64,000 bases of DNA from Adineta vaga. Lineage: Eukaryota > Animalia > Rotifera. Made by a program: the position numbers and the translations under genes. Under the pieces are notes generated by a model. That model was given only the letters and a program-made list of their open reading frames with translations. It ran no database searches and was not told the origin of the DNA. The stretch lies in contig CP075494.1 of assembly GCA_021613535.1 (NCBI GenBank), positions 12,400,001 through 12,464,000 of the forward strand, given 5' to 3'. Shown here piece after piece: positions 2,406 to 30,526 of this stretch; position 1 is the stretch's first letter, and the number at the start of each line of letters is the position of its first letter.

Positions 2406-3597
2406 TTTTGCTTTTATTTATTTCCACATCTTAAGAGAAATTATATTACTGGAATTGCTTTTCTTAAAAATAAACTATTTTAATAAGGTGCACTATACTA
2501 CACTTATTTGCTTTACTAAGTCTTTTACAAATACAACGAAGAAATTATAATATAGAAGGGAGCAGAAATAACCATTTGAGAATACTTTAAGTTCATTAAA
2601 ATCTTCCTACAGACGTTTACTCCTACACCGTGAATCGTTTGCTTACAAAAGAACAAAACGATATTGTAGCAAAATATAAATATTTACTCGTCATATCAAT
2701 CTTCTATCATCTGATGAAACAATTCTCAGTCGTTATTAACATATCTAAATCTCTTTAAATTTGGACTGAATGTACGTTCATATTAACATCAGCTATTCTT
2801 AGTGAACATCAATGATAATTTTTGTGTCAGTATGGCTCATCGACTACTGTTTATCCTAGTTAATCACTTGTTGATGTACCATTCACATCTATTTTCGTCT
2901 TCATTTTTAACAAAACTATACATCACTGTATCGATATCCGCTTTTTCAGTTGACAGTCATCTTCATCAATTGTATACAATTTATATTCGGATTTTATATA
3001 ATAATACTTCATCGATTATCATTCATACCACACTAAATCGGATGATTAGATTACTCATTGTAGGATAATTTGTATCAATCGAAATGCTTCTCATCAATGT
3101 GTCATAGTCACATACGTTCATATGATACTGAAATGCTACTATTACTTCGACGAACATTTACAAATGATGTTTATTCGCATCTTCAATGCAATATGTCTAT
3201 TTTTTAACACGTAGTATTCTATGCCTTGAATCTACACTTTCATTTCAAGTTGATTATCATCAATCTTTAACGAATAATTCACAAATCTATATAAACGATT
3301 TAGTATAATTTGCGAATGAATTTTTTCCTTCGACTAAACATCTGAATATAATGAATATCTAAATCATTGGAAGAAAACAATCCAAATCAATCATGTAAAA
3401 CTAGTGTACATTAGGACAATGACTTTCCATTGTAATTGCATCTTTTTATTGGATCCAATAAATCATCTTCTAACTTTTGTCTTCTATAGAATTCATTGTT
3501 ATATGAATATTGAAAATGAATTGATGTGTGCAAGCATTTCATATCGTTATTATAATATGTATAATCAATGAAACAAATACTAAATATTAGTATAGAC

Positions 3598-3716
3598 GCT
3601 TACGGCCATACCACGTTGAATACACCAGTTCTCGTCCGATCACTGAAGTTAAGCAACGTCGGGCTCGGTTAGTACTTGGATGGGTGACCGCCTGGGAATA
3701 CCGAGTGTCGTAAGCT
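3598..3716 (+). rRNA. 5S rRNA (cluster 1, copy 1)
   Basis: 119-nt GCTTACGGCCATACC...GTCGTAAGCT with complementary ends, box A (AGTTAAGC), box C (TGGATGGG) and a downstream T-run. Confidence 0.98.
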
Positions 3717-3741
3717 CTTTTTTTTCATTCTTTTTTCTCCT
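3716..3741 (+). terminator. Pol III oligo-T terminator (similar after every full 5S copy)
   Basis: T-runs directly 3' of the 5S end, followed by a second T-run. Confidence 0.85.
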
Positions 3742-3986
3742 TTTCACATTTATATCACGCTTAGAACTTTTTCATCCAGATTTTCAATTCAATCTTCGCC
3801 TTTTGTCGATCACAAGCTGTATCAATCGAAATCAACGCCTATCAGGTGATTATATTTTAGAATGATGCTATCTGTGTTTTTTAACTACAGACAAACATCC
3901 ATAGTTTTCAATTGAAATAGACAATAGTCGAAAACGAATATATAGTTCTGATAGAGTTAAAAGCGGCCAATATCCGTTAGTTGTAC

Positions 3987-4105
3987 GCTTACGGCCATAC
4001 CACGTTGAATACACCAGTTCTCGTCCGATCACTGAAGTTAAGCAACGTCGGGCTCGGTTAGTACTTGGATGGGTGACCGCCTGGGAATACCGAGTGTCGT
4101 AAGCT
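3987..4105 (+). rRNA. 5S rRNA (cluster 1, copy 2)
   Basis: Identical to copy 1. Confidence 0.98.
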
Positions 4106-4349
4106 TTTCTTTCATTCTTTTTTCTCCTTTTCACATTTATACCGTGCTAGAACTTTTTCATCCAGATTTTCAATTCGACCTTCATTTTTTGTCGATGACA
4201 AGCTGTATCAATCGAAATCAACGCCTATCAGGTGATTATATTTTGTAATGATGCTATCTGTGTTTTTTAACTACAGATAAGCATCGACAGTCGAAAACTG
4301 ATATATACCTATGTTAGAATTAACAGCGACCAATATTCGTTAGTTGTAT

Positions 4350-4468
4350 GCTTACGGCCATACCACGTTGAATACACCAGTTCTCGTCCGATCACTGAAG
4401 TTAAGCAACGTCGGGCTCGGTTAGTACTTGGATGGGTGACCGCCTGGGAATACCGAGTGTCGTAAGCT
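4350..4468 (+). rRNA. 5S rRNA (cluster 1, copy 3)
   Basis: Identical to copy 1. Confidence 0.98.
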
Positions 4469-4713
4469 CTTTTTTTTCATTCTTTTTCTCCTTTTCACAT
4501 TTATACCGTGCTAGAACTTTTTCATCCAGATTTTCAATTCGACCTTCATTTTTTGTCGATGACAAGCTGTATCAATCGAAATCAACGCCTATCAGGTGAT
4601 TATATTTTGTAATGATGCTATCTGTGTTTTTTAACTACAGATAAGCATCGACAGTCGAAAACTGATATATACCTATGTTAGAATTAACAGCGACCAATAT
4701 TCGTTAGTTGTAC

Positions 4714-4832
4714 GCTTACGGCCATACCACGTTGAATACACCAGTTCTCGTCCGATCACTGAAGTTAAGCAACGTCGGGCTCGGTTAGTACTTGGATGGG
4801 TGACCGCCTGGGAATACCGAGTGTCGTAAGCT
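4714..4832 (+). rRNA. 5S rRNA (cluster 1, copy 4)
   Basis: Identical to copy 1. Confidence 0.98.
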
Positions 4833-5018
4833 CTTTTTTTTTCATTCTTTTTTCTCCTTTTCACATTTATATCACGCTTAGAACTTTTTCATCCAGATTT
4901 TCAATTCAATCTTCGCCTTTTGTCGATGACAAGCTGTATCAATCGAAATCAACGCCTATCAGGTGATTATATTTTAGAATGATGCTATCTGTGTTCTTTA
5001 ACTACAGACAAACATCTA

Positions 5019-5408
5019 CATTCTAAAGAAAAAAGGATCTTCTCCTGCACGCAAAAAGGTTTCGTGTAAAACGTTTTTCCAAAAAGAGATTGAAGGTTCC
5101 GTACCAAAGGTTGGGAGGTTTACAGATATATATTAGGTTCCGCATAAACTAGGCAGAACCTTTAGAGCACCTACTGAATCTCTAGCAGTTGCGTATGAAA
5201 GATGCATAACCATCAGTAGTTTGGTTTGACACACAAAAAGCTTATTGGAGGTTTAGTAGGAAACTACGGAATTGCGTGTAAATTTCTGAATCCAAAAAGG
5301 TTTTCTTTGACAGCTACGGAAATTTTTCCATTCTGCCAAACTTATAAAAGTTCGCCACAGAACTACTGAACCCTTAAAGTTTAGTAAAATAACTTCTTCT
5401 TTAGAGCG
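5019..5408. mobile_element. Non-autonomous DNA transposon / MITE, ~390 bp
   Basis: ta|cattctaaagaa ... ttctttagagcg|ta: imperfect terminal inverted repeats flanked by TA, internal ggttcc/gaacc motifs, no ORF. It begins where 5S spacer homology stops. Confidence 0.6.
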
Positions 5409-5698
5409 TAGAAGACTCACGAAGAATTAAATACATAGTACAAAAAAGATCTACTCGAAAGTAAATCATGCCTAAAGGAAATGAATGGGAAATTATCACA
5501 AAAAACAAAGTCTTTTCATCTTTATTAATTAAACTATAACAAACAATAAATGTCCGAAATTCGTTTCTTAATATTAAACAGTCAGTTTACTCCCGAAAGT
5601 TTTAGTTGTTTAAAATAGTAACAACGAGTTTAGCAACGAAATTTCGTACCTTTCTCATTTTTCAATTTATTTAAACGGAAAAACGATGAAGAAAACAA

Positions 5699-5802
5699 GG
5701 GTCAACCTGACTTTGGTCGAAAGGTAATATGTCGAAAAAAGACATGTAGATGGTACCGTTTTTCTTCGACATTTTTCTTTTCGATCAAAGTCTGGTGAAT
5801 CC
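5699..5802. repeat. ~104-bp imperfect palindrome (mini-MITE-like)
   Basis: gggtcaacctgactttggtcgaaa pairs imperfectly with tttcgatcaaagtctggtgaatcc; the inner atgtcgaa/ttcgacat pair also matches. Confidence 0.55.
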
Positions 5803-5941
5803 GATCGTGCTGTTGTTGCAGGTTTTCCTAACATGATCGTGAAATCGTGTTCTTATTGGAAATATATAGAGTCTGGAGTGTCTGTGAATGGAAATGAAGA
5901 TATATGTGAGAAACATGTCAAGAGAAAACTAGTGCTTTTAC

Positions 5942-7364
5942 CTTGTTATACTGTAATGCAGCAGCGAAAAGTTTTGCTTCAAAATCTCCGATTTTATTCA
6001 TTTGAAGATCCAGTTTCTTGAGTGACTGTTAATAGAGAAAAGTATGAATATGCGGGAAATAAAGAGCACACAGCAATGATCACCTTGTTATCTCGTATTG
6101 CAGTAGCCAAATATTGAGCTCCTACACGTGTAATTCGATTGTCGACAAGACGTAGATCAGTCAATGTCTGTAGACAGCAGTGATGATGACAGATGTAAGA
6201 AACAGGTGAAGAAAATATTACGACTTTTACCTGGTTATCTTGCAATGCAGCAGCGAGATATTGTACACCAACATCTCCAATTTCACCGCTTTCGATATGC
6301 AATGTGGTGAGTGCCTACAAATAGAGACAAAGATAGATGTGAATAACAAGCGAAGAGAAAATTATGACTTCCACCTCGTTGTCTCGCAACATAGCAGCGA
6401 AATGTTGAGCTCCAACAGCTCCAATTTGATTTCCTCCAATCAATAGCTTGTTGAGTGTCTACAAATTGAGATGACAATTAACATGAAAGAGGTAAAGTGG
6501 AAATGAGGATGATCACCTTGTTATCTCGTAATGCAGTAGTGAGATGCCGAGCTCCAATTTGTGTGATTTTATTGTTGGCAATGTACAGCCCGGTGAGTGT
6601 CTGCAGATAGGGTTGACGATAGATGTGACACATTATTAGATAAAGAAAAAATGCTGATGATTACTTCGTTATGTCGTAGTGCATCAGCAATATAATGAGC
6701 TCCATTATCGCCAATGTTGTTGTAGTGAAGATTCAAATAAGTAAGAGTCTGTCCATAGAGTTGAAGATAGATGAAAAAATAATGAACGTAATTACTTTGT
6801 TATGTTGTAATGCATTAGCGAGATATTGTGCACCTATATGTCCGATGCGATTTTGCTGAAGATCTAGTTCCTTGAGTGTCTGTTTATAGAGAGAAAGATG
6901 AACATACGCGAGAAAAAGAGAAAATAAGAATGATCACTTTGCTATCTCGTAAAATAGTAGCGATATATTGTGCTGCAACATCTGGAAGTTTTCGCATCGT
7001 AATGCTCAGGCTAGAGTGTGTCTTTAAATAGAAATAAAAATAAACTTTTACGAAATGAATGGGAAATATTAGAAGATAATAACGTAGGAAAGAAGTTTAT
7101 GTATGCTTCTATAAAATTCATGTGATTAGAAAGTTATTTTTTGCTTTCTATGGTTTCTCAAAGTAACAAAGTAAAATTTATAATTTTCATTTGTCTATAG
7201 ATAAAGCTTACTTCATTCCGATAATAACTCAACACAGTTGCATCTAGTCTTGTACAAACATTGAGCATTGTGCATACGATGTTGTATAAGCTGAGATTGT
7301 CAAGGATCCGATAAATCAACTCCACAGGCAGTGTATGAAGAGAATGTATATTATTGTTCACCAT
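5942..7364 (-). CDS. F-box-like + RNI-type leucine-rich-repeat protein; final exon not resolved
   Basis: Exon 1 has LHTLPVELIYRILDNL (F-box-like). Eight ~84-nt exons follow, each one 28-aa LRR (e.g. TLTDLRLVDNRITRVGAQYLATAIRDNK, SLKKLDLQMNKIGDFEAKLFAAALQYNK), separated by ~50-65-nt introns. Confidence 0.82.
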
Positions 7365-8798
7365 CGTGTCAAATTGTTGATTTCTATGTTTTTCTGAAAA
7401 ACGAAAACTATATATCGTCTTTTAGTCTTGATTTCGTGAAATGTGATCACATAGTTTCCATTACATAGCCATCTACGGATCTTACTAGCTTCATATTCTT
7501 TAATTGTATATATATACCTTTTCAATTATTGAATTCATTTTTCAACAAAAGATATTGAATTAATAATTATTTTCTACGAAGTAAATGTCTGTTAGATGTA
7601 TAGAAAACGATCTGACTGAGAAAAACCTCACCCTCAACACCCTCAAGATTACTGAATATGATAAAATGTAGCGAAGCTTTTTGGTACATATTATTCTAAA
7701 TTATTACGTAAAATACTATAATATCTGCGAATACTCAGTTGTCAAAACCTAAACTGTCGTAAGATCATATTCATCAACAAAATTCGAGAAACCAGTCCAG
7801 GTCCACTCGGTCGGTCCCCTGTTTACGCTATTGGATAATATATCTTGCTAATCTCACTCTTTAACCGTCACCCTCAATTTTTTAGTGTATAGTTGCGCTG
7901 GATGCTCTATCCTGTTTATTCCACAATACTAAAAACAAATAATATGATACTCATCGTTTAGTGTAGTCTCATTGAGAAAACAGATGAAACATTGTGAAGA
8001 ATACCATCTTATTCCATGAGGAGAAACTGAAATAACACACATACAACCACACGAAGAAAAAACAATATATCCATAGGAAAATCCGAGAGTATAAGCACAT
8101 GTATATGACTTAACAATTGCCATTTATATACAACTGACTCAAGACCGAAGACGAAGGAGGTGATTCATCATGGCTGAAAGCCATAAAAACACACGATAAA
8201 CATGTGCTGTACGCACATGGAATTGGAAATAACAATACGAAAAACGAAACCATCGAATAGTGGAAGCCACAATGTTATTGAAAGTAAATAGTCTATGTTG
8301 GAAAAAAGGAAAAAAATGTCAAGTACTGTATGTATATGAAGATATATCGTTTTTATACTTACACTGCGAAACACATATTTTCGATATCGTTTGAACAATA
8401 ATTTTATTTCGTTGAATTTTTTTAACATTAACAGTACTTTCTTTCAAATATGAGTGTAGATACCAATGGTGGAGAAAGGAAAGATAACTCTGAAATTTTC
8501 AAGCACATACTTTCAACATAGCTACTAAGAAGGAATCCAAAGGTTAACTTTAAATTCATGTATTCACTGTAAGATATCTTGTGTTACAGTTCTTTTCTAA
8601 CCGTGATGAAGGTAGAGAGAAAATCTCGTCTTTAGTGTTATGGAATATTACAAAAACATTCCATAGGGAATTATCCAACATATATTCTTTCTTTCTATTG
8701 TCTATACCCTATATCAGTCTTCTGGTTTTTTCCCCAGTCAGATTTGTGTTGGCAGTAGTGAAGGGAATTTCTCTATGACATGTGGAAACTACCTAACG

Positions 8799-8802
<4 letters not shown>

Positions 8803-8830
<28 letters not shown>
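8803..8830. repeat. (TA)n microsatellite
   Basis: Direct reading. Confidence 0.9.
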
Positions 8831-8835
<5 letters not shown>

Positions 8836-9086
8836 TTATTTATTCATATAGATCCAATATTTTGCGTGTTTGTAAGATTATTATTGAAGTTACCAATAAA
8901 CATAGAGGATAATTATACGACTTGTCTCTTTAACATATTGGTTAGACGAGGACATAATATTTTAATTTCATTTAATAGAGTCAAACAATTAATTTTGATT
9001 TTAGAAAAATCTCGTTAATCGAATAAACAAAATTATTTGAATTAAAAGTTTATATCTTTCTGACTTCTAAAACAAATACTGAAAAC

Positions 9087-9392
9087 ATGCAAGATCCAGT
9101 TGAATCAGACGAAAGTGAAGATATAAATGATTATGATGATGATGATGACGATGAACAATCTGGCGAATCTGAAACAAGTGAAGGTGTAGTTGGAATGGAT
9201 TATTTTGAAGACGAAGGACAATTTATACACGAAGAAGATAATAGTGATGATGATATGGGACAACCAGATGAAGCAGACAAATTTCTAGCAAATTCAGAAA
9301 TGCTCAAACTTGGCGAAAAAAAAGTTAAAGTAGACCAACAAAATTGTGACGAGCTTAACAAAAATATTTATAAACATAAATTTTCTTCTGAA
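9087..9392 (+). CDS. Acidic (D/E-rich) exon, probable first exon of the downstream TIR-NACHT-HEAT gene
   Basis: ATG-started acidic frame ending GAA|gtaagt (phase 0). It joins in frame to the acceptor tttag|GAA at 11224. Confidence 0.5.
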
Positions 9393-11223
9393 GTAAGTGT
9401 TTGACTTCATGAAAAAATTGCGTTTTTATCTTAAAGGATATTATTTAAATAATGTTCCAAAACAGGCGACGGTAAATATTTGTTTAAAGAGTAAAACCGA
9501 GAAGACTTTCTAGACTACTGAATTATTTGTGGAAGTTCCATAGGTTTATCATTTGCTATTATGAACAAAAATAGTTTATTAAGTCAGAATTAATATAGTT
9601 ACTCTTTCATACATTGCATAAATTATATTTCGATAAATTGTCTAGTGGGTGTGACTTATTAGGAAAAGCAATGCGATTTTACGTTTCTCTATTTATTCTA
9701 TATTACAAACAGAAAAATGTCGAAAAATTTAGTATGGAAAACTAAATCTTGATTATTTTTTCCTTGATTAAAAATTAACGAAAGTTTATATGCTAGATTG
9801 TAGCATTCATTTGTTTTTCAACAAAGTTATAATAATAGAAATCAAAATAGAATATGAAACATGATATATGTCGTTTTCTGTTACTACTAGTAGTTAATCT
9901 TAATCGTCAAAAATATCTGATAGGTTCTATTGATTTGCTGCAGTACAGATACATACTGTTGGGTTTTGAGTGGTGAAAGAATATGTTCTCATTGTTCTTT
10001 CCAATAAAGTTTCTAGTAGAATTTAACTTTTTATATTGCACAAAAATCTTGAACTTTTACCCTTTTCTGTGTTAAATTACCTTACTTAATCTTATATTTA
10101 AATCTTGCGCACTGTAAGAGATTGTAAAACTACACATATTTGTCAGATGATGTTTCACGTTGATCATATCAGTTAGATTTGAAAGTATGTCAAGTACATT
10201 CACTCACTAGTTACGACAGAATCCTACAGGAATCTTTGTGACGGAATTGCATTGAGTTCCGTCGGACAATTCAATTGAAATTTGTCGAATGTTGGAAATT
10301 TTACGAGCGTTCATTTTAGCTATAATAGAGAACATCCACTTTGACGCATCGAATCTGAGTGGTGGAAAACACTCAAATATTTATCGATTATAACAAACAG
10401 TAACTTATTCACATCATGCATTTACTCACTATACATTGACGAAGATGTGTGTAGAATCATAATTTTTCACTTATCAACATCATAAATCGTTTGTTATACA
10501 CTTTAAAGAGTTTATTGAGCTCATATACAAAGCTAAAAAAGCGCATAATAAAATACTTTTCTGAAAGCTTTATGAGTTTAGTAAGCTTTTTTTAAGTGAT
10601 ATATATATGCTTATATACCATAATAGGCGACCAAATAATCGAGGTAGAAAAGAAAAATAGTTACCATTTTTTCCTCAGAGCATCTTGATGTGTCCGATCA
10701 TAGTGTATTTCAGTCTATATAATAGATTTTTAGTACTAAGACCTACCAAATATCAATTTTCTATAAGGGAAAAGAGTTTTAGTAAAGATATTGAAGCCTG
10801 ATATTTCTAAAATCGCTAAAAGAGAGCACTTGAGAACTTTGCATCCATCACAGCAGTTGTTTTTTTACGAGAACTATCGAGCTCAAAATATTCATGAATT
10901 TCAGCAGTCGGTTCTTTGTAATTTTTATTTAAAAAAACCAACCCATTTTTCGTGGCTTTTAGAATTACATCTTTCTAAGGACTATTGCATTCTTAATTGA
11001 GTGCATTTAACACAAGTAAGAATACGTACGCATATCACTTCTCTCGTTAGTAGTGGGTTTAATTGATATAATTAAGTGATGCTTTCGATGTTGCACATAT
11101 TATGCAGCTATCGATAGCATACTAAATCTCTCTTATTCCACAAAATATACTCCATTTATGCAACAGATAACCTTATCAGCGAACTACGACAAAATAGTTA
11201 TTAGAATATTTCTCAATTTTTAG

Positions 11224-14200
11224 GAATCTAGCAATATTGAATACAGATCAACTGATTCTACTGGAATCACATCGATGATGCACAATGAAAGGAAGCAAGT
11301 CGTGCTCTCATATAATTATAACAGCAAGCAGATCGTGGAAAAAGTTTTCAACATTCTGAAGGAGAAAAATATATCAGTTTGTTATGATGATCAGCACATG
11401 GAAGCGAACATCTCCGACGGGTATAGATTCTAAACTTGAAGAACTCTTTTAAAATAACATGAGATGGAATTTTTTGACGTTTAGCATCAACAGCGCCGTA
11501 GATACAGCTGAGATCGTTTGCTGTTTTATGACACCAGAATATCAGGATTCCATTAACTGTAAAAATGAATTACAGTATGCTAAAGAGAAAAACAAGTATA
11601 TTATTCCATGTATGATTGGCGATAAGCAAAACAAGCAATGGAAACCAACTGACTGGTTGGAATTCATCGTAACAGGTCTTAACTATATCGATTTTCAGGA
11701 AGAGTCTGATCAAAATATTCGATTAAAAGCTGAAGAACTTATTAACAGAATATCAAATCAATATTCAACAACTGTTCAGTACAGTTTGGTCGATGTCATT
11801 AAAAAGAAATATTTAAAAGAAGATAAAATCAAATTTATATTGGATGAAGAGAATAACTTGTCAATCGAGCACATCTATATTAATTTGGCAATGGTAAACA
11901 CAAAAGATCAGCACAACAAGCAAGAGAAGTCACCAAAATATAAAATGAAAAGCACGGCAAATCCAGAAAAAGAACAAGATTATGAGTGGAAACAACACGA
12001 TAGTACGATTTTAGGCGCCTATGAAGAAATTTATGGTAATCAAACGCGAATTGACATCGAAGGAATTTTTGGAAGCTCCAATGCTCCCATAAAAAAAGTG
12101 CTGATACTGGGACGACCAAAAATTGGAAAATCAACATTTTGTCAATATGTTACTTATCAATGGGCGAAAGGGAAGCTCTGGTCTCGTTGTGAATTGGTTG
12201 TGTTGATTGACCTCCTAAAGCTGACTAACACTCGATATCCAGCGACAAAACTTTACACATTAGTTGATCTTATTGAGAGAGAATATACAGCATGCGGTGG
12301 TTTATCACAGAAGGAAAAAACATCTTTCTTGCAAAAATGTAATAACGGAAACGTTTTATGGATATTGGACGGATATGATGAATTAACTGTAAAGATTCCA
12401 GAACAACTGAAACAGTGTTTGGATGATATATATGAAAAACAAAATTATATATTAATGTCTTCATCTTATGAAATTGTAACTTCATGCGATGTGAAAATCA
12501 AAATAATGGGATTTATACATGCTGATATTTCAAGGTATATCAAGCACTTTTTTCATCGGATTGAAGGTGAATTACCAAATGCTTCCTCCGAACGCCAAAA
12601 ACTACTGGATTTCTTATATTCAAATCGGAGTATTCATCGTGTTGCCAGTATTCCTGTAAACCTTGAACTGATATGTAGCCTTTGGATTGATCCACATCAG
12701 TTAGAAACGAAAGTATCAACAATGACTGCATTGTATGAGAAATTCGTAGTATGGCTTTGTCGACGACAACTCACAAAAGACAATAAAAATCTAGAACAGA
12801 TGACGAAAGACGCTCTCTATAAACAATTCGATAGAGAATTACAATTTTTGGAATGTTTAGCTTTCAAAACGGTGCAAAATGACAGAATTATTTTGCCCGC
12901 AGATCTTGTACAAGAGGCAACAAGAGAAACCGGATACGATCTACACGAATATTCCCAGGTTTTACAACTGGGCATTCTGAAATCATATGATAAAAAGTCA
13001 TTTGAAAATCAGAATGAAACTACAAAACAATATTATTTCATTCATCCCAGTTATCAAGAATTTTTTGCGGCACGTCATTTACTGAGAGCATTGAAAAGTT
13101 CAAATGATAATGAAGCTACTCATTTCATCAGCCATCAAAAATACAATCAACGATTTCGTTTGATATTTATTTTTGCCATGGGTCTTCTCGTAGAATCCGA
13201 TTATCAAGCATGCATCAATATATTTTGGACAAAGATTCAAGGGGAACCCCTTGATCTTGGTGGTCTTCAGCACTTACAACTTCTCACTGAATGTATCGAT
13301 GAGCTGGGCGATTCAGACGTATTTGATGATCGATTAAATATACTAAACAAACTAATGCATTTATTCAAAACATTCTTCGATATCGAAGCGAACGTCGTTA
13401 AAGATAATATGATAGCAATTCTCTCGAAAACATCGACTATATTTCAAAACAAACTCATGCAAAACAATCTGGCGCAACTACTGCATATCAGTGATAAATC
13501 TCAGAAATGTCGATTACTTGGTTTAATATCTCAGTTACCTGCGTTGCAACCCACCGAAAAACTCTTCTCTGTGCTTCTCCTTCACTTACGAGACTCATCA
13601 GACTCAATTCGGCAAGGAGTCTGTACTGTTCTCGGAAACATTGGCACTAACGTAGTGACCAAGCAGCTCACTGATGCTCTTGTCAAAGCACTTGGAGATA
13701 ATCATTGGCTTGTTCGCATAGCTGCCTGCAAAGCTCTTGGAAAGCTGAATAAGAATGCAGTAACAAATAACATAATCGATGGGCTCATCAAAGCACTCGG
13801 TGCCAGTTCGGACGACGTTACCACAGCTGCGTGTAATGCTCTAGTAAAATTGAGTGAAAAAGTAACAACCAATCTAGTGATCGATGGTCTCGTCCATGCA
13901 CTTGGTCATCATAAAAACTTCCTTGTTCGAATAAATGTGTGTGAAATTCTCGAAAAGATCGCTGAAAAAACACCAATCAATGAAGCGATTGTTGTCCTCA
14001 TCAATGCACTTGACGATGTAGCCATCGGCGTCAATGACTGTGCGCATGAAACTCTTATAAAGCTCAGCAAAACAGCATCGGCCGATAAGTTGATCACTAC
14101 TCTCATCCATGCACTTGCTGTCCATGAGAACTACCAGGTTCGAAAAAATGCATGCAAGATTCTCACAGAGATTGCTGAAAGAGCACCAAACAATGATGTG

Positions 14201-20418: not shown

Positions 20419-20687
20419 CTTTTTTTCATTCTTTTTTCTCCTTTCCACATTTATATCCTGCTAGAACTTTTTCATCTAGATTTTCAATTCAATCTTCGCC
20501 CTTTGTCCATCCCACACTGTGTCGCTCGAACTCAACATCTATCAGGTGACTATCATTTTCGAATGATATTTTTTGTGTTTTTTAACTACAGACTCACATC
20601 GATAGTTTTCAATTGAAATAGACAATAGTCGAAAACAAATATATAGTTGTGATAGAGTTAAAAGCGGCCAATATCCGTTAGTTGTAC

Positions 20688-20806
20688 GCTTACGGCCATA
20701 CCACGTTGAATGCACCAGTTCTCGTCCGATCACTGAAGTTAAGCAACGTCGGGCTCGGTTAGTACTTGGATGGGTGACCGCCTGGGAATACCGAGTGTCG
20801 TAAGCT
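20688..20806 (+). rRNA. 5S rRNA (cluster 2, copy 2; A25G variant)
   Basis: gaatgcacc instead of gaatacacc. Confidence 0.97.
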
Positions 20807-21138
20807 CTTTTTTTCATTCTTTTTTCTCCTTTCCACATTTATATCCTGCTAGAACTTTTTCATCTAGATTTTCAATTTCATCTTCATTTTTGGTAAGATG
20901 CAATATCTATAAATAAATGTAATTAATTGCCCATTAGCTAGTGAGCATCGTAACTACAAATGTTAAGCTGAATCAGTGAGAATCGAAGGTATGCTCAGAT
21001 AACATATTTTCGAATGATATTTTTTGTGTTTTTTAACTACAGACTCACATCGATAGTTTTCAATTGAAATAGACAATAGTCGAAAACAAATATATAGTTG
21101 TGATAGAGTTAAAAGCGGCCAATATCCGTTAGTTGTAC

Positions 21139-21257
21139 GCTTACGGCCATACCACGTTGAATGCACCAGTTCTCGTCCGATCACTGAAGTTAAGCAACGT
21201 CGGGCTCGGTTAGTACTTGGATGGGTGACCGCCTGGGAATACCGAGTGTCGTAAGCT
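21139..21257 (+). rRNA. 5S rRNA (cluster 2, copy 3; A25G variant)
   Basis: Same variant. Confidence 0.97.
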
Positions 21258-21527
21258 CTTTTTTTTCATTCTTTTTTCTCCTTTCCACATTTATATCCTG
21301 CTAGAACTTTTTCATCTAGATTTTCAATTCAATCTTCGCCCTTTGTCCATCCCACACTGTGTCGCTCGAACTCAACATCTATCAGGTGACTATCATTTTC
21401 GAATGATATTTTTTGTGTTTTTTAATTACAGACTCACATCGATAGTTTTCAATTGAAATAGACAATAGTCGAAAACAAATATATAGTTGTGATAGAGTTA
21501 AAAGCGGCCAATATCCGTTAGTTGTAC

Positions 21528-21646
21528 GCTTACGGCCATACCACGTTGAATGCACCAGTTCTCGTCCGATCACTGAAGTTAAGCAACGTCGGGCTCGGTT
21601 AGTACTTGGATGGGTGACCGCCTGGGAATACCGAGTGTCGTAAGCT
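21528..21646 (+). rRNA. 5S rRNA (cluster 2, copy 4; A25G variant)
   Basis: Same variant. Confidence 0.97.
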
Positions 21647-21978
21647 CTTTTTTTCATTCTTTTTTCTCCTTTCCACATTTATATCCTGCTAGAACTTTTT
21701 CATCTAGATTTTCAATTTCATCTTCATTTTTGGTAAGATGCAATATCTATAAATAAATGTAATTAATTGCCCATTAGCTAGTGAGCATCGTAACTACAAA
21801 TGTTAAGCTGAATCAGTGAGAATCGAAGGTATGCTCAGATAACATATTTTCGAATGATATTTTTTGTGTTTTTTAACTACAGACAAACATCGATAGTTTT
21901 CAATTGAAATAGACAATAGTCGAAAACAAATATATAGTTGTGATAGAGTTAAAAGCGGCCAATATCCGTTAGTTGTAC

Positions 21979-22097
21979 GCTTACGGCCATACCACGTTGA
22001 ATGCACCAGTTCTCGTCCGATCACTGAAGTTAAGCAACGTCGGGCTCGGTTAGTACTTGGATGGGTGACCGCCTGGGAATACCGAGTGTCGTAAGCT
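21979..22097 (+). rRNA. 5S rRNA (cluster 2, copy 5; A25G variant)
   Basis: Same variant. Confidence 0.97.
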
Positions 22098-22343
22098 CTT
22101 TTTTTTCATTCTTTTTTCTCCTTTTCACATTTATATCGTGCTAGAACTTTTTCATCCAGATTTTCAATTCGACCTTCATTTTTTGTCGATCACAAGCTGT
22201 ATCAATCGAAATCAACGCCTATCAGGTTATTATATTTTAGAATGATGCTATCTGTGTTTTTTAACTACAGATAAGCATCGACAGTCGAAAACTGATATAT
22301 ACCTATGTTAGAATTAACAGCGACCAATATTCGTTAGTTGTAC

Positions 22344-22462
22344 GCTTACGGCCATACCACGTTGAATACACCAGTTCTCGTCCGATCACTGAAGTTAAGC
22401 AACGTCGGGCTCGGTTAGTACTTGGATGGGTGACCGCCTGGGAATACCGAGTGTCGTAAGCT
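22344..22462 (+). rRNA. 5S rRNA (cluster 2, copy 6)
   Basis: Identical to the major type. Confidence 0.98.
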
Positions 22463-23389
22463 CTTTTTTTTCATTCTTTTTTCTCCTTTTCACATTCATA
22501 TCCTGCTAGAACTTTTCATCTAGATTTTTAATTCAATCTTCGCCTTTTGTCCATCCCACACTGTGTCGCTCGAAATCAACACCTATCAGGTGATTATATT
22601 TTAGAATGTTGCTATTTGCGCTCTCTATCTGGAAATACAGTACTAGAAAAAATGATAAGAACAAGTAACGCTCATCCTCTGGATTCGCGGACCCTGTTCT
22701 GAAAGAACGATAAGAGTGCTCAGTAAAACCCTCAAGCTGGATCTGAACTTAGCCGGATCCCGGTCCAAACAAACGTTTGACATAAAAGCTTTTTAAAAGT
22801 GTTTTTCATCTTCTCACCATTTCAAAGTATCACTCTAAGTTTTGAAGATATGGTGTTTTCGTGAGTTCCGTTTATTAATGAACAAGAACAAGAGAGAAAG
22901 AAACACACGTATATAGATAAGATATAGAGAGAAGAGAGAAGAACTAGATGGCGCACAGTGTACGATATACGAAAGAGAACCAAATACATGCGCGTATATA
23001 TACGTATATGTTTTGGAGAATTCCTTCATATATGTGATCATATGAATAGGGAAAACTTCAATATACGTATTTCGGAATTGTCCATACTAACAAACATAAT
23101 TGACGATACGTAAGAGACTTATGGTTCCAGTTTGAGCTAATCATGAAAAGCTGTGAAACTCTTTCTATCAATGAAATTATTCTTTATTTGACTCTTTTAG
23201 ATCATCAAATTGCAGAGAGTAGACAGATCAAAAGAAAAGACCTACATATTGTTACGTTTAGTATTTTAATTAATATTTCTGTTGATAAATTTAGTAGTCT
23301 GAGAATCTTTTATTTCAGAAGCTTGTTAAATCAAACTAACTATATCTATTTTGAAGATTATAATGAATATAAAATATTACGGATGTGCT

Positions 23390-26300
23390 TTAGCTTTCAC
23401 GGCTATTGTCAGGCATTTGTTTTTTTAAATATTTCATATTTTGCTTTACTGTTTGTTGAAAATTATCACTAACGTAAGTTGACGAAGTATTGCTTGCTCG
23501 CTTGTAAAAACTATATGCAATTCGATGCTGACGATCGCCAATATAATGACAACACAGTCCTATTTCGTTATAAAGTATAGGTAGTAATTCATTCTCCTGT
23601 ATATCAACGTCTTGTCTAAAAATATTACGGGCTTCTCGCAAATAAAATAAAGCTCGTTTGTGATATTCTTTTCTTCTATGTACTGATCCAATAAATATCA
23701 AAACTCTACTCAAGCTAATATGATGAACTGGATTGGAATATCGACGAAAAATAGTCAGAGATTTTTTCAAACTTTTTAAAGCTTTATTAAGCTTGTTATT
23801 CTCCAGATAAGTTTGACCAATATTGCAGTATACATTTGCAAGCACAATATTAGTCTCTTCATTTTCATTTGATAATAAAGAATTTTGTTGTGCAATTTCT
23901 AATACTCGATTACAATGATACATAGCTTTGGTTATGTTGCCTAGAGAAGAGAATGATGCTCCTAAAAAACTATGCAATTTAATCAATACATCAAAGTTCG
24001 ATTTCTTTTGTTGTTGGTGAATATTAAGAGCAAGTTTGTAGTACTTATTTGAAATTTTAAATCGTTTTTGAAATCCTTTTAGTATTCCAAGTTTAGTATA
24101 TGTTTTTGCTATCCGAACGTCGTTTGATGATAGATTCGATGTAAATAGATTACGTGCATTTTTTAAGAAAGTATTTGCTTTTGAATATTGTTTAATTCTA
24201 AAGAATTCTTCTCCAAGAAGATAATAAGCTTCGCCTAGATCAATTGAAGGAGATGGTTCCGCTTTTAAATAGATAGCTACAGCTTTTTTATACCATTTGA
24301 TAGCTTTTTGTGACATTTCTTTATTTGCATATAAAGTGCCTATTTGGCAATATGTGAAGGCAATTTCAATCTTACTCTCGGGTGAAAAGAGTTTATGAAA
24401 TTGTATAGATTTTTTAAAATATTTTTCTGATGCTTTGAATTGATTTTGATCACCATAATTAAGTGCCATTTCCTTATAAGTTTCGAACAATTGTTCACCA
24501 CATTCGGGCAGTAAAAGACATTGGCGTTTGGCCAGATCTTTCAGAATACACAGCGCCTTTTTATGTTGCTTTTTTGCGCGAAAAATTGTTGCTCTTATCG
24601 TATGGGTGATAAACGAAGCCTTAAATTTCAACGGATTTTTGTAACGATGTTGAATTTTCAACGATTTACGGCAATAAATAATAGCTTTTTTATATTGTTC
24701 TATATCACTGTATGCTGTTGCTAAGTTATTGTAGACGATCGATATATTATAATAATCTCGAAATTCACATTGTCTCAGGTGATATAAACATTTTTTGAAA
24801 CATTTCAAGGCTAATCTCGAAAGATGTCTTTTGATATAAAGAAGACCAAGATCAGTGTATATTTGAGATATACGATAGTGATCCAAATTGTGGATTGGCT
24901 TATCTAATAAAACTTTTAACGATTTATAATACTTATCAATAGCATCTGTTGTTTGATCTGCTTCATCGGATATACTACCCATCATTCGATACGTATCAGC
25001 TATATCTGGATGTGAAGGTGGTAATGTTTTTATACGAACTTCAAGTGCTTTGTTTGAATATTTGAGTGCATTTTTATGATCATGCATATCAAAATATACC
25101 GATGCTAGATTATTGTATGTTACAGCAATATCAGGATGATTATTAGGTAAATGGTTTAGTTCAATTTCTAGTGCTTTTTCAAAATTCTTCACAGCTTTCT
25201 TTCTTTTATTGAGTGAACTATATGTATCTCCAATATTGTTATATGTCGTTGCTAATGTTAAATGATAACTAGGAAGAAGTTTCATTTGAATATCTAAAGC
25301 TTTTCTTTCGTATTTTAGGGCAACTTTTCCAGCATCCATATGACTAAGTACTGAACCAAGATTGAGGTAAACTTCGGCAATATTCAAATGGCGCGCAGGT
25401 AATGTTTTTCTAAAAATTTTCATAGCTTTTCGTAAATATGCTTTTGCGATCTTGTATTGTCCGCGATCCGTATAAATAGTACCAATATTATTAAAAGCCA
25501 TGCCAACATCTAGATGATCAACCGGTAATTCCTGAATTAGAAGTTTGTAATATCGTTCGGCTTTATCAAGTTCATGAATCTTGTGAAGATATTCACCTAA
25601 AATAAGTAGAGAAGTTGTTTCACCAATACGATTATAATAGTCATTAAGTAAATATTGTATTTGTTCATCTTGCTCACTACTTAAACTTAGTACTACATGC
25701 CAAAAGTCATCGTTAAATTGTTCACACGATTCGATCTTAAATATAGTACCCATGCTAAACAATACTTCTTCCTCATTTTGATTTGTACTCCATTTCTGAA
25801 TATCTGCAAAAGGTTGCGTTTGTACAGAAATATCAACTATTATCTCGAATAGTACACTCTCAGCAATCGGTCGTAGTGATCCTCCAGAAAAAAATTCGAC
25901 AGCTATTTCTGATGATTTACTCGTTGAAAAAAATGTATTGATAGATATATATTGATTTACGCTTGACTTTATCTTTTGAAATTCCGTTGTCGAAACAAGT
26001 TGACCTCGATAGAACGTTAATGTAGATGATTTTGCGCTAGAGATAAATTGTAAGTGCATATGACGTAGTTGCTTGTAGAGATCGATAATGAAAAATCGGT
26101 AAAGAAAAATGTTATCAATATTTTCCGTTCTTAATGCTTTGTTTACCAGTCGATATACAAAGGAATCACGAGTGTACCATTTCAGAGCAGCATCTCTTGA
26201 ATATGATCGTTCAAATTCATTAATGTTTGATTGTTCAATTAGATTATTTTTATATTGATCGCGCGCTTCAGTTATCATATCTTGTTTAGCACTATTCGAT

Positions 26301-26929
26301 TCTGGTAATCGAACTAAGACTTGTAATAGTATCTGTGACCAGAAAAATGATGGCTTTTCAGTTGAATCCAATGAGTGAGATGTCTGTTCCAAGGTTATAA
26401 TGTTCATAGGCAACTGACTCAAACATAAATAAACATCATCGTGTAAATTGTTATAGAGTAATTTTTCATCGATAAATACACCGCGTATCTTTGGATATTC
26501 CATAGACCAAACTTTATGTGCTTCAATATTTAAGCAAAATATGTATATAGAATATAATTGATCAAGATGATGAAGTAATGGAACAACTTGTTTTCCTACT
26601 TGACCAGAAACAACTAAAAAAATTCGTTCATTTTCAATTGTGCATATATATTGCATACAATCATCTATATTATCGAATATTTTAAGATAATTTACAATGT
26701 TTCGTAATTTTTCAATATGATGATACCGTGCACGATATTGAACATCCAACCATATGATGAGGCAGTCTTCCAGATTTTCCTTTTCGTCATTTAAACAATT
26801 GAATAAGTTGAGATCTTGCTGTTTACTCCTGTTATTTGTTTTATAGTCATTTTTTAATTTTCTTAACTTTTCAGAAGTATCCGGTTTTGATGATGTTTTT
26901 TCCATCAAGCCAATAACATTTTTATCCAT
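23390..26929 (-). CDS. ADP-ribosyltransferase (R-S-E type) + TPR-repeat protein
   Basis: Intronless 1179-aa ORF with an N-terminal WLD alpha/beta domain, FYRGQ / FFSTS / NEEEVLF catalytic motifs, then diverged ~42-aa TPRs (LPNNHPDIAVTYNNLA). Confidence 0.88.
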   Translation of the reverse strand: MDKNVIGLMEKTSSKPDTSEKLRKLKNDYKTNNRSKQQDLNLFNCLNDEKENLEDCLIIWLDVQYRARYHHIEKLRNIVNYLKIFDNIDDCMQYICTIENERIFLVVSGQVGKQVVPLLHHLDQLYSIYIFCLNIEAHKVWSMEYPKIRGVFIDEKLLYNNLHDDVYLCLSQLPMNIITLEQTSHSLDSTEKPSFFWSQILLQVLVRLPESNSAKQDMITEARDQYKNNLIEQSNINEFERSYSRDAALKWYTRDSFVYRLVNKALRTENIDNIFLYRFFIIDLYKQLRHMHLQFISSAKSSTLTFYRGQLVSTTEFQKIKSSVNQYISINTFFSTSKSSEIAVEFFSGGSLRPIAESVLFEIIVDISVQTQPFADIQKWSTNQNEEEVLFSMGTIFKIESCEQFNDDFWHVVLSLSSEQDEQIQYLLNDYYNRIGETTSLLILGEYLHKIHELDKAERYYKLLIQELPVDHLDVGMAFNNIGTIYTDRGQYKIAKAYLRKAMKIFRKTLPARHLNIAEVYLNLGSVLSHMDAGKVALKYERKALDIQMKLLPSYHLTLATTYNNIGDTYSSLNKRKKAVKNFEKALEIELNHLPNNHPDIAVTYNNLASVYFDMHDHKNALKYSNKALEVRIKTLPPSHPDIADTYRMMGSISDEADQTTDAIDKYYKSLKVLLDKPIHNLDHYRISQIYTDLGLLYIKRHLSRLALKCFKKCLYHLRQCEFRDYYNISIVYNNLATAYSDIEQYKKAIIYCRKSLKIQHRYKNPLKFKASFITHTIRATIFRAKKQHKKALCILKDLAKRQCLLLPECGEQLFETYKEMALNYGDQNQFKASEKYFKKSIQFHKLFSPESKIEIAFTYCQIGTLYANKEMSQKAIKWYKKAVAIYLKAEPSPSIDLGEAYYLLGEEFFRIKQYSKANTFLKNARNLFTSNLSSNDVRIAKTYTKLGILKGFQKRFKISNKYYKLALNIHQQQKKSNFDVLIKLHSFLGASFSSLGNITKAMYHCNRVLEIAQQNSLLSNENEETNIVLANVYCNIGQTYLENNKLNKALKSLKKSLTIFRRYSNPVHHISLSRVLIFIGSVHRRKEYHKRALFYLREARNIFRQDVDIQENELLPILYNEIGLCCHYIGDRQHRIAYSFYKRASNTSSTYVSDNFQQTVKQNMKYLKKQMPDNSRES

Positions 26930-28628
26930 AAATGTCTGAAATATCGTCTAAGCAATATTGTAAGAAACGTTCAAAATAGAAATATTTGCTAATTTTTTTA
27001 AGCAACTGACTAAATTTTCTAATCTAATATACTTAAGTTCTATTTCAGTATTTGCTTCAAATATAATCCCGAACTAGTGCAGCGACTACACTTGTTTATT
27101 AGCAAACTCATATTCGATATTAGATTGGATCACAATAACAACATGGATCCAAAAAGCTAATCATGAACAGATAATTGATGTCAAACGTTAAGATAGTTTC
27201 TAGCGAGAGACGTCGTATTCGATGCGAAATGTGCTCGTATCTTCGAGTTTGAATGCATATTTTGAGAGAAATGATCGAAACGTGAAATAAGTGATATTAC
27301 TATTGAATGGTTTATATACAGATAACAGGCATTACACATGGGATTGTAAAGTCAAATAATTTAATTAAGAAAATAAATAAAATTGGGGATAGATTTGATA
27401 TAATACACAAGGATAACAGATGATCTTGCTACGAATCGAGTCATAAAATGCGGTAAAACTCTTTAAGGACTCACCAGAATAGATTCACGAGAGACTTTAT
27501 TCACACGAAGCTCAAAAATGCTTAGATTTCGCTGCAGAAATCGGAACTTTTCAAGTGATATATTAGTTCCGTGTACTAAAACTTCATGCTATTTAAGAAT
27601 AATATGGTCTTAATTATATAAACATGTCTAGCTCATTGAATAATGTTCGTTTTACGCTTTGACACATAATTCAAAAACGTTTATTCAGCAATTTTGAAAG
27701 AATTAATAAAATACTGACGATGTTTCATCGTATAGAATATGAGTTATAAATTTCTCAAAACTATATTTTTTAATATATAAAGAAATCAGTCCATAAAAGT
27801 TTCCATGACTACATCGATTATAAAAGCTCTTTCTTATATTTCGTAGTCGATGAAACCTCTATTGATCGTCATTTACCTGTTTTTGCGTACACGCTCAATA
27901 CTAAAGTAGTATAACTATTCAGTAAAAACGGTTGCTTCAGGAAACATGTGCATATTCAACTTTCAGTCAGCAAACAAGACAAACAGGCATTGGTAATAAA
28001 TTTTTTTTCTTCCTCTATCGTTTCTAACGAAACAAACCGGTTATAAGATTCTGTAGCAAGCTTGTCGACATGAAGTTTTACGATCGATCAGCGGGCAACA
28101 ACACAGAAGAAAAGAAAAACGCATGAATGATCGCTTTTAAACGAAGAACTATTACTCATTGCAGCAAATAAAGAACAATTGCGAGCATCAAAAGGCAAAC
28201 CAATCATGAAAGATGACAAAGGATGAGTGTGTGTGTGAGTAAGTTGGAGTTTTATATGATAACGAATTAGAAAGATGAATAATCTTTTTCCATGGCAGTG
28301 TCATAAAAATGTTCAAAAAAACACATTATAATCATTTAATTAAAATAAGTTTAGCTATACTAAATTTAAGATTGAAGTACAAAGTTGGAAATAATATTAT
28401 TCCAGACAAGTAATACTAGAATTCCGAATAGCAGTCATCATGAATTTTATACGAAATTCTAAGGATTTTCAAGCTATTTTTATATATTCAATATTCAAAA
28501 ATTTCGAAGTATCATAGAATACATTCGTTCCAATCTAATTTTATACAACTGTAGAGCAAAGAAAAATAGAAACCTTTTTAGAAAAATCGAAAAAGTCTTT
28601 GCTTCAGCGATCATTAGGCTTTACATTC

Positions 28629-28686
28629 GTGGGTGTGAGCGTGGGTATTAGATAGATGTAGTACCCACACCCACGTCCACACCCTC
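28629..28686. repeat. G-rich/C-rich inverted repeat of degenerate GTGGGT units
   Basis: gtgggtgtgagcgtgggta ... tacccacacccacgtccacaccc. Confidence 0.6.
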
Positions 28687-28755
28687 AAGAGAATACTTGA
28701 AGACGGATATTTAGCTGCAATAGAGTTAAAACTGACAAAGATGCGTTAGTTGTAC

Positions 28756-28874
28756 GCTTACGGCCATACCACGTTGAATACACCAGTTCTCGTCCGATCA
28801 CTGAAGTTAAGCAACGTCGGGCTCGGTTAGTACTTGGATGGGTGACCGCCTGGGAATACCGAGTGTCGTAAGCT
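28756..28874 (+). rRNA. 5S rRNA (cluster 3, copy 1)
   Basis: Identical to the major type. Confidence 0.98.
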
Positions 28875-29142
28875 TTTTTTTCATTCTTTTTTCTCCTTTT
28901 CACATTTATATCCTGCTAGAACTTTTTCATCTAGATTTTCAATTCAATCTTCACCTTTTGTCGATGACAAGCTGTATCAATCGAAATCAACACCTATCAG
29001 GCGATTATCATTTTAGAATGATATTTTTTGTGTTTTTTAACTACAGACAAACATCGATAGTTTTCAATTGAAATAGACAATAGTCGAAAACGAATATATA
29101 GTTGTGATAAGGTTAAAAGCGACCAATATTCGTTAGTTGTAC

Positions 29143-29261
29143 GCTTACGGCCATACCACGTTGAATACACCAGTTCTCGTCCGATCACTGAAGTTAAGCA
29201 ACGTCGGGCTCGGTTAGTACTTGGATGGGTGACCGCCTGGGAATACCGAGTGTCGTAAGCT
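29143..29261 (+). rRNA. 5S rRNA (cluster 3, copy 2)
   Basis: Identical to the major type. Confidence 0.98.
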
Positions 29262-29531
29262 CTTTTTTTTCATTCTTTTTTCTCCTTTCCACATTTATAT
29301 CCTGCTAGAACTTTTTCATCTAGATTTTCAATTCAATCTTCACCTTTTGTCGATGACAAGCTGTATCAATCGAAATCAACACCTATCAGGCGATTATCAT
29401 TTTAGAATGATATTTTTTGTGTTTTTTAACTACAGACAAACATCGATAGTTTTCAATTGAAATAGACAATAGTCGAAAACGAATATATAGTTGTGATAAG
29501 GTTAAAAGCGACCAATATTCGTTAGTTGTAC

Positions 29532-29650
29532 GCTTACGGCCATACCACGTTGAATACACCAGTTCTCGTCCGATCACTGAAGTTAAGCAACGTCGGGCTC
29601 GGTTAGTACTTGGATGGGTGACCGCCTGGGAATACCGAGTGTCGTAAGCT
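29532..29650 (+). rRNA. 5S rRNA (cluster 3, copy 3)
   Basis: Identical to the major type. Confidence 0.98.
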
Positions 29651-29925
29651 CTTTTTTTTCATTCTTTTTCTTCTTCTCCTTTTCTAATTTATACTGTGAT
29701 ACAACATTTTCATCTGGATTTTTAATTCAATCTTCGCGCTTTGTCCATGCCAAGCTATATTAGTCGAAATCAACAACTATCAGGCGATTATCATTTTAGA
29801 ATGATATTTTTTGTGTTTTTTAACTACAGACTCACATCGATAGTTTTCAATTGAAATAGACAATAGTCGAAAACGAATATATAGTTGTGATAAGGTTAAG
29901 AGCGGCCAATATTCGTTAGTTGTAC

Positions 29926-29998
29926 GCTTACGGCCATACCACGTTGAATACACCAGTTGTCGTCCGATCACGGAAGTGAAGCAACGTCGGGCTTGGTA
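29926..29998 (+). pseudogene. 3'-truncated 5S rRNA pseudogene
   Basis: Matches 5S for only ~72 nt with four substitutions, including box A (agtgaagc); box C and the 3' stem are absent. Confidence 0.9.
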
Positions 29999-30526
29999 AT
30001 CCTTCGGTCAATCACTTCCTGATGATTATTGGTAAGTATTTCCTGTTTCAATAAATACTGATTTCTGATTGGTTAGGACAGACAAACTTTATGTATCTCA
30101 AACCCATGATTTTCACGCTGTATAAGCCTTTCTTTCCGAAAACGGAATATCAATTTTAATTATTATTATTTATTTTTTCAGGTGTAATATTGTCTTCTCT
30201 TATATTAATAAATGTAAAAATATGCGAAAATGATGAAGTCGATTTGAAAATCTATTTGTATTGAGATGCTGCGGGACAGTAATAAAAAAAAATGAAAAAA
30301 ATCTAGGATGTCACAGTTGATGAGCTATTATATATTTGATTCGTTGTCTATGCATTACTGCGTCACAGTTATGCGAAGCTAAAAATCACACATAAAATAC
30401 CTGACTCATTGTATTGACGAAGGAAAAATCACTCGATCATGATGATACGACAGAACGTAAAATATAAAAGCATATTCTTATACAATTTTTCGTATTGCTT
30501 GCTTACATTTTTTTATCGCATTAGAA

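Follow-up and report, generated by a model that had tools for sequence, protein, structure and literature searches.

The arrays of 5S ribosomal RNA (5S) genes that bracket immune-type genes in a 64,000-nucleotide stretch of chromosome 5 (C5:12400001-12464000) of the bdelloid rotifer Adineta vaga (referred to below as the window) probably reflect a lineage-specific history, in which single 5S genes were amplified and blocks of other DNA were later relocated among them, rather than a dedicated 5S cassette system. The first of two bracketed intervals holds an F-box-like/LRR gene and a TIR-NACHT-HEAT gene, and the second holds a gene for a predicted ADP-ribosyltransferase (ART)-TPR protein (Table 1). 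An earlier reading of the sequence, here called the original prediction, had proposed that the 5S blocks may act as landing pads or recombination handles for such genes.

An Rfam search of the window returned 17 5S matches, of which 16 were intact genes scoring 115.2 to 115.8 bits (Rfam gathering score, 38) and one was a degenerate copy scoring 42.3 bits. The three plus-strand arrays (A to C) span 26.4 kb, and 5S arrays flank both cargo intervals on each side, in agreement with the original prediction of three same-strand clusters dividing 26 kb into two intervals. An inverted array (D, 38.7 to 39.6 kb), which lies beyond the range covered by that prediction, had not been described. Since a 40-mer of the 5S gene occurs just 53 times, at 19 loci, in the 100.8-Mb six-contig genome and 16 of these occurrences are in the window, the clustering is far beyond chance. 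Chromosome 5 as a whole holds 19 copies. The window is the largest 5S locus of the genome, the runner-up being a pure 11-copy tandem at C4:3.80 Mb.

The 119-nt 5S gene was 99.2 to 100% identical among all 16 intact window copies, and the readable dispersed copies were identical over the 119 nt, except for four array B copies with one substitution. Every copy is directly followed on its 3' side by a run of five to nine T of the RNA polymerase III terminator type, and transcription is predicted. The units, each a gene plus a non-transcribed spacer, stand head to tail with lengths of 364, 389 and 451 bp, and the arrays reported by TRF had 91 to 95% matches. Array A has units of 389, 363 and 364 bp and a terminal spacer that ends abruptly after 184 nt, while array B consists of an 840-bp higher-order repeat (389 + 451 bp) present twice plus one 364-type unit, with a terminal spacer that ends at 146 nt. 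The spacer family is common to arrays A to D and private to the locus: elsewhere in the genome we found just 110-nt partial matches at 76 to 80% identity, and two metagenome scans with patterns specific to the spacer gave no matches.

We then compared the site with its counterparts in relatives. In Adineta steineri (contig L021), the order is GKRP, a spliced gene of 523 amino acids, a single plus-strand 5S gene, NmrA, an unnamed gene, a Bcl-2/Snf7 gene call, another gene, a histone gene and a single minus-strand 5S gene; the GKRP call carries the Pfam domains GKRP_SIS_2 and GKRP-like_C. In tblastx comparisons, window positions 957 to 2438 were collinear with L021 1 to 1502, and positions 30418 to 38338 were collinear with L021 4550 to 12723. 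The distance between GCKR and NmrA is 27 kb in A. vaga versus 3.2 kb in A. steineri. All of the A. vaga sequence between the start of array A and the end of array C is represented in A. steineri by one 5S gene with no cargo, and the position of array D is occupied there by one inverted 5S gene. An Adineta-like metagenome contig (L025) carries 3' remnants of GCKR, followed by one 5S gene about 390 bp upstream of NmrA, again with no cargo. The placement of array C relative to NmrA is that of the single 5S gene on both contigs. At the NmrA locus of Rotaria socialis, neither 5S nor synteny was seen. The 'empty' orthologous intervals that the original prediction anticipated were therefore found, as presence/absence at the level of species: the site is loaded in A. 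vaga and holds one 5S gene on the two other contigs, and one loaded state was seen.

The two single 5S genes of A. steineri have 90-bp upstream flanks that are identical at 88 of 90 positions. In A. vaga, a private motif close upstream of the gene occurs in the first copy of array A and in the outermost copy of array D, and in no internal unit. Because this motif is common to both, these two copies are likely the positional orthologs of the inverted A. steineri pair.

The cargo of interval 1 was analyzed with exons or single open reading frames (ORFs), not joined spliced gene models, as queries, and the same holds for all comparisons below. The ORF at 11459-16810 matched Pfam TIR_2 (36.5 bits; cutoff, 28), NACHT (35.9 bits; cutoff, 26.7) and HEAT_2 (343 bits), which bears out the TIR-NACHT-HEAT gene named in the original prediction. 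The upstream exon (11275-11433) encodes the start of the TIR domain, and the extent of the gene was taken from an 1868-amino-acid gene call on contig L026 and from collinearity. Orthologs have the same architecture, with an N-terminal TIR, a central NACHT and C-terminal repeats, and by this domain order the predicted window protein is of the TIR-NACHT-repeat (STAND/NLR-like) type. The neighboring gene had been described as F-box/LRR. Its LRR part held up (LRR_6, 25.2 bits; cutoff, 23.4), while its F-box part is weak, as the window exon had no Pfam match at an E value of 0.01 and a paralog at C3:4.58 Mb gave an F-box-like match (E value, 0.002) that is below the cutoff. The transposable-element relics reported for this interval could be confirmed in part, as a low-copy repeat of about 170 bp at 19819-19987 with at least eight copies and as a segment of about 1.4 kb with 82 to 91% identity to C3:2698330-2700122 (2.70 Mb). 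As had also been claimed, no housekeeping genes were seen in intervals 1 and 2. Sequence comparison of both intervals revealed no 5S or spacer relics inside them.

The closest relative of the TIR-NACHT-HEAT protein (P0098) was 87% identical and is encoded on L026 (GCA_905331485.1, CAJNYT010004957.1) and L027 (from GCA_905332275.1), two contigs labelled Rotaria socialis. At the DNA level, window positions 5529 to 17454 matched L026 2147 to 15859 at 82 to 90% identity in blastn, mostly 88 to 90% and with non-coding DNA included, and both ends of the match were sharp. No 5S gene was found in L026 or L027, and in L026 the search extended 2.1 kb leftward and 3.7 kb rightward from the block. The corresponding distances to 5S arrays in the window are 512 bp (end of array A, on the left) and 2.8 kb (start of array B, on the right). 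The same gene pair, likewise in divergent orientation (55 to 74% translated identity), is present on the Adineta-like contigs L031 (309 kb) and L032, where no 5S was found beside it, and orthologous F-box/LRR exons are present in L026, L031 and L032. In A. steineri, the NACHT ortholog (contig L028) is 67% identical and 5S-free, and the F-box/LRR gene is not adjacent to it. The cargo is thus 5S-free in four other taxa, as the pair on three other bdelloid contigs and as the NACHT ortholog alone in A. steineri. On these comparisons, the pair is an old two-gene unit with a usual context that lacks 5S, and therefore would have moved into the array in the A. vaga lineage. Judged from the DNA match, its placement in the array is younger than the divergence of about 11% from the organism of L026.

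The divergent F-box-like/LRR and TIR-NACHT-HEAT pair, present in at least four bdelloid genomes, could also work as a functional unit, such as an NLR-like protein and a dedicated F-box partner. As for the source of L026 and L027, the housekeeping NmrA ortholog of R. socialis is 70% identical in protein, versus 88 to 90% in DNA for the block. The two contigs look like contamination by a rotifer of the A. vaga complex; transfer between bdelloids seems less likely. The genes that flank the block in L026 were also followed as a guide to its donor site. Their family counts more than 330 candidates in A. vaga, with best identities of 55 to 57%, and no ortholog could be named. The family of L026 16799-18785 occupies more than 330 places in the A. 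vaga genome as ORFs of about 1550 amino acids with a 7tm_1-like region, and a pseudogene relic of this family lies inside a 5S-bracketed interval at C2:6297850-6298329.

Interval 2 was described in the original prediction as holding a single ART-TPR gene, and this was confirmed. The ORF at 23390-26929 matched the Pfam domains ART (PF01129, 30.3 bits; cutoff, 22.3) and TPR_12 (241 bits), and by these domains its product is a predicted ART-TPR fusion. Relatives were found at 60 to 70% identity, and no 5S is present at the one readable locus among them (R. socialis, L029). The A. steineri ART-TPR gene that lies beside the NACHT ortholog (L028) was considered as the ortholog of the window gene and rejected, since its identity of 30 to 44% is at the level of paralogs. 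A second full-length gene of the family (1121 amino acids) lies in the window at 54964-58329, outside every 5S interval; its TPR units are encoded by a 126-bp tandem repeat of 15.5 copies with 89% matches.

Two boundaries of the cargo intervals lie near degenerate telomeric repeats. TGTGGG is the rotifer telomeric repeat and is enriched around transposable elements and in dynamic subtelomeres (PMC7943196, PMC8494291). The double telomeric hexamer, with two mismatches allowed, was observed eight times in the window against about one expected. Two head-to-head pairs were present, and no pair of this kind arose in any of 300 simulated windows. Their positions near the boundaries fit DNA of the subtelomere type. 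The same head-to-head motif, often with perfect repeats, stands beside NACHT and ART genes in L026, L028 and L029; in several species, pairs spaced 20 to 40 bp apart recur right beside NACHT and ART-TPR genes. Fused healed ends and a small foldback element are both possible origins of such pairs.

The similarities among 5S units suggest how the arrays arose. Duplicates within arrays are 99 to 100% identical (A2/A3, B1/B3, B2/B4 and C1/C2). Across the 15 kb of interval 1, units A2/A3 and B5 are 97 to 98% identical, whereas A1 and A4 are 93 to 94% identical to C1 and C2, and D units are 90 to 93% identical to those of array C. Because the A2/A3-B5 identity of 97 to 98% stands against a divergence of about 11% from L026, arrays A and B were contiguous or exchanging after the split from the L026 organism. 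The simplest reading of these comparisons would be that local amplification produced one continuous array, which inserted DNA later broke up.

We propose that the NmrA-to-H2B housekeeping block was ancestrally flanked by two single 5S genes in inverted orientation. Each of them would then have been amplified locally in the A. vaga lineage, giving short tandem arrays with one private spacer family, and two blocks of non-5S DNA would have split the plus-strand array into three pieces. The first block would have brought the old F-box-like/LRR and TIR-NACHT-HEAT pair, and the second may have brought one member of the very large ART-TPR family; for the first block, double-strand-break repair or the ectopic joining of subtelomere-type DNA is the most likely route. 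Once in place, the 5S repeats could, like direct repeats in general, give rise to subsequent deletions or duplications, but nothing points to a dedicated cassette function.

Several observations weigh against this history in its simple form. The left ends of arrays B and C are at the same point, about 62 nt before the first gene (-62), and carry the same private sequence variant. Because this identical left junction is not expected from two independent random insertions, the history may be more complex, for example one in which array B was copied in secondarily or in which insertion had a site preference. The 97 to 98% identity between arrays A and B could result from ongoing exchange between arrays, in which case the repeats would be recombinationally active. 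The telomere-like pair after the NACHT gene is also present after the A. steineri ortholog, so that it may travel with the gene instead of marking an insertion. The polarity of the change rests on two outgroup contigs (L021 and L025) of provisional phylogenetic placement, and the L026 organism entered the comparison through the cargo block and its flanks. The A. vaga side of the analysis rests on one haplotype assembly, and the enrichment tests given below took in half of the other 5S loci and the top-scoring subsets of the families.

It was proposed that 5S mini-arrays serve as landing pads or handles that repeatedly load, unload and copy defence-type cassettes. We consider this unlikely, even though several features of the locus would fit it. 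Cargo is present at the site in A. vaga and absent in two relatives, two separate non-5S blocks lie in one array, arrays B and C have the same left junction position, and units of A and B are nearly identical across 15 kb. However, the block is 5S-free in four other taxa, and 5S-bracketed intervals are not reserved for defence-type genes: at other loci they hold a CorA transporter gene and a G-patch gene, and in the window the third interval (C to D, 30.0 to 38.7 kb) holds ordinary genes, namely NmrA, an unnamed gene, Snf7/CHMP, Bcl-2, another gene and H2B.

The genome-wide distribution of the cargo families bears on the same question. As the cassette proposal would have it, two 5S genes at C3:4.58 Mb flank an F-box paralog, and at C3:11.10 Mb the start of an ART gene is about 400 bp away from an inverted 5S gene. 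Yet the families are so abundant that chance neighbors are expected. The ART domain gave about 894 first-look candidates in the genome, with all 98 of those scored being strong matches, and the LRR exon gave about 859; background rates were derived from these first-look counts. One of the 97 other scored ART paralogs lay within 40 kb of another 5S locus (C2:6251240, at 37.6 kb), versus about 1.4 expected. The 200 kb around nine other 5S loci held one ART-family gene (the one at C3:11.10 Mb), versus about 1.8 expected, and no NACHT genes were found there. The TIR-NACHT-HEAT subfamily has seven full-length members, and the other six are all more than 190 kb from any 5S; the window NACHT gene is single-copy, with its nearest paralog, 52% identical, on another chromosome. 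The 200 kb around the nine loci also held one F-box paralog (41 to 45% identity), in the opposite orientation relative to 5S. The original prediction would have NACHT, ART and LRR genes enriched beside 5S, and within the limited power of these comparisons no enrichment was seen (1 of 97 for ART and 0 of 6 for NACHT).

Mixed flank combinations and a circularly permuted monomer at other 5S loci would also suit mobile 5S cassettes. At C2:6279000-6308999 (L009-L011), which holds four 5S genes with a CorA ORF between two of them, copies 9778 and 11314 have the same upstream flank, and copies 11314 and 21475 have the same downstream flank. At C3:11093000-11102999 (L020, 8361-8899), the inverted 5S is a circularly permuted, nearly complete array monomer, in which 286 nt of the 449-nt spacer precede the gene and 134 nt follow it; a re-integrated circle or a formerly longer array would each give such a monomer. 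Nevertheless, no cargo common to different 5S loci was seen at the loci compared, and no recombinase or integrase was found among the window ORFs scanned against Pfam, a scan that is not exhaustive for short or spliced genes. A search of the intervals for an R1/R2-like ORF (reverse transcriptase or endonuclease) was likewise negative. Of the landing-pad proposal, species-level presence/absence therefore stands, while enrichment, a recombinase, repeated use of the site and exchange of cargo were not seen.

A related idea, which we regard as rather improbable, is that broken-end or subtelomere-type DNA is preferentially captured by 5S arrays in bdelloids. The units lodged there would be gene modules with telomeric repeats at their ends, here the NLR-like gene pair and the ART-TPR gene, the -62 junction would reflect the site preference, and the repeats would later drive loss and duplication. 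If this were true, asexual lineages would gain presence/absence variation of immune-type genes.

The direction of change could also be the reverse, the loaded state being ancestral and the A. steineri and L025 lineages having lost the cargo by recombination between direct 5S repeats and collapsed to one 5S gene. Deletion between direct repeats leaves exactly one repeat, as seen at the empty sites, and the length and similarity of the direct arrays would suffice for homologous recombination. We nevertheless hold this to be quite improbable, since A. steineri has kept its TIR-NACHT-HEAT ortholog at another, 5S-free locus, three further taxa, the closest included, carry the pair without 5S, the A. 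steineri 5S spacer shows no relation to that of the A. vaga arrays, and two independent collapses would be required. An assembly artefact joining unrelated contigs across 5S repeats is highly improbable: repeats of 0.4 kb at 90 to 100% identity are classic mis-join sites, but each array is distinguished by unit subtypes of its own and by unique junction sequences, the arrays (1.3 to 2.4 kb) are well within long-read length in a chromosome-level assembly (PMC8494291), and both outer flanks are syntenic with A. steineri.

An amplification of single 5S genes with later relocation of blocks can be set beside several known systems. Dispersed or interrupted 5S rDNA, and 5S linked to histone genes among others, is known in various fungi and animals. 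The A. vaga locus resembles it in its short head-to-tail units, in the many small loci with array-specific spacers and in 5S lying beside H2B; it differs in having NLR-like and ART-TPR genes between pieces of one array, and in that synteny shows the growth of arrays from single genes in one lineage. The library that was searched contained no relevant literature on 5S organization in rotifers. NLR gene clusters evolve by unequal crossing-over in plants and animals, and the locus likewise places a rapidly evolving receptor gene of the STAND type in a structurally variable region rich in repeats, although the repeats here are 5S units, not NLR paralogs, and the NACHT gene is single-copy. Integron-like cassette arrays are alike just in layout, with cargo between repeated sites; no integrase, defined attachment site, cargo exchange or enrichment was seen here. 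Subtelomere-type DNA of bdelloids contains expanded families, transposable elements, foreign genes and interstitial TGTGGG repeats (PMC8494291, PMC7943196). The intervals share with it the expanded-family genes, low-copy repeats and telomeric relics, and the telomeric motif flanks orthologs in other species, yet the locus lies at 12.4 Mb of a 16.9-Mb chromosome, away from the chromosome ends, in a conserved housekeeping neighborhood.

The locus would accordingly provide a dated, synteny-anchored example of a bdelloid multicopy RNA-gene locus built from single genes, and would show immune-type gene blocks moving between genomic contexts without sex, while the tempting reading as a cassette system is set aside as unsupported. 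Two leads emerge from it, namely the pairs of telomeric repeats flanking NACHT and ART genes in several species and the conserved F-box/LRR-NLR gene pair.

Table 1. Features of the window, with related telomeric-repeat pairs on other contigs
Feature	Position	Strand	Remarks
GCKR/GKRP gene, 3' part	957-2438	+	Left syntenic anchor; collinear with A. steineri GKRP, L021 1-1502
5S array A	3598-5016	+	Four genes, at 3598, 3987, 4350 and 4714 (3598-4832); Rfam 115.8 bits each
Interval 1, non-5S DNA	5017-20237		15.2 kb, between arrays A and B
Block common to L026/L027	5529-17454		11.9 kb; blastn 82-90%, sharp homology ends
F-box-like/RNI-type LRR gene	~5798-7364	-	Intron-rich; LRR_6, E value 1.4e-5
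TIR-NACHT-HEAT gene	11275-17363	+	TIR exon 11275-11433; main exon 11459-16810; last exon ~16962-17363
Patchwork filler	17455-20237		~1.4 kb matching C3:2698330-2700122 plus ~170-bp low-copy repeat
Head-to-head degenerate TGTGGG pair 1	17467-17529		Starts 13 bp past right breakpoint of block
5S array B	20238-22608	+	Six genes, at 20300, 20688, 21139, 21528, 21979 and 22344 (20300-22462)
Interval 2, non-5S DNA	22609-28693		6.1 kb, between arrays B and C
ART-TPR gene	23390-26929	-	Intact 1179-amino-acid ORF; Pfam ART and TPR_12
Head-to-head degenerate telomeric pair 2	28628-28687		At junction of interval 2 and array C
5S array C	28694-30038	+	Three genes, at 28756, 29143 and 29532 (28756-29650); degenerate copy 29926-30038
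NmrA-like gene	30527-31432	+	Right syntenic anchor; Pfam NmrA; 75% orthologs in A. steineri and L025
Housekeeping block	32190-38338		Unnamed gene, Snf7/CHMP, Bcl-2, unnamed gene, H2B; collinear with L021 5825-12723; Pfam Bcl-2
5S array D	38669-39636	-	Three inverted genes, at 38749, 39133 and 39518; spacer family as in A to C
Head-to-head TGTGGG pairs elsewhere	L026 1814-1892, 7239-7313; L028 8800-8877, 9631-9691, 21946-21998; L029 23281-23341		

Several further observations were made at the flanks. The NmrA-like gene is intronless and has dozens of metagenome matches at 53 to 58% identity with bacterial-style names (YbjT), along with matches of about 40% in fungi; it may be an old foreign gene. 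A probable ohnolog (57%) lies at C2:5144023 (5.14 Mb), and no 5S genes were found within 336 kb of it; C2 is homoeologous to C5 (PMC8494291). The C2 5S loci that we analyzed were considered as ohnologs of the window and rejected, as they had no matching flank genes.

In A. steineri, an inverted duplication of about 2.1 kb (L021 2108-4227 and 13163-15163), containing one gene and a 5S at 80 to 92% identity, brackets the NmrA-to-H2B block. Positions 1 to 5700 of L025 carry bacterial-looking genes (Por_Secre_tail, NifU, RecR and a glycosyltransferase) joined to rotifer genes (the GCKR remnant, NmrA and Bcl-2), and could represent either a foreign-gene cluster in a bdelloid or a chimeric assembly. 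Farther to the right in the window, the ORF at 49759-52818 is intact and encodes 1019 amino acids with a DUF7932 domain and a short collagen-like stretch.

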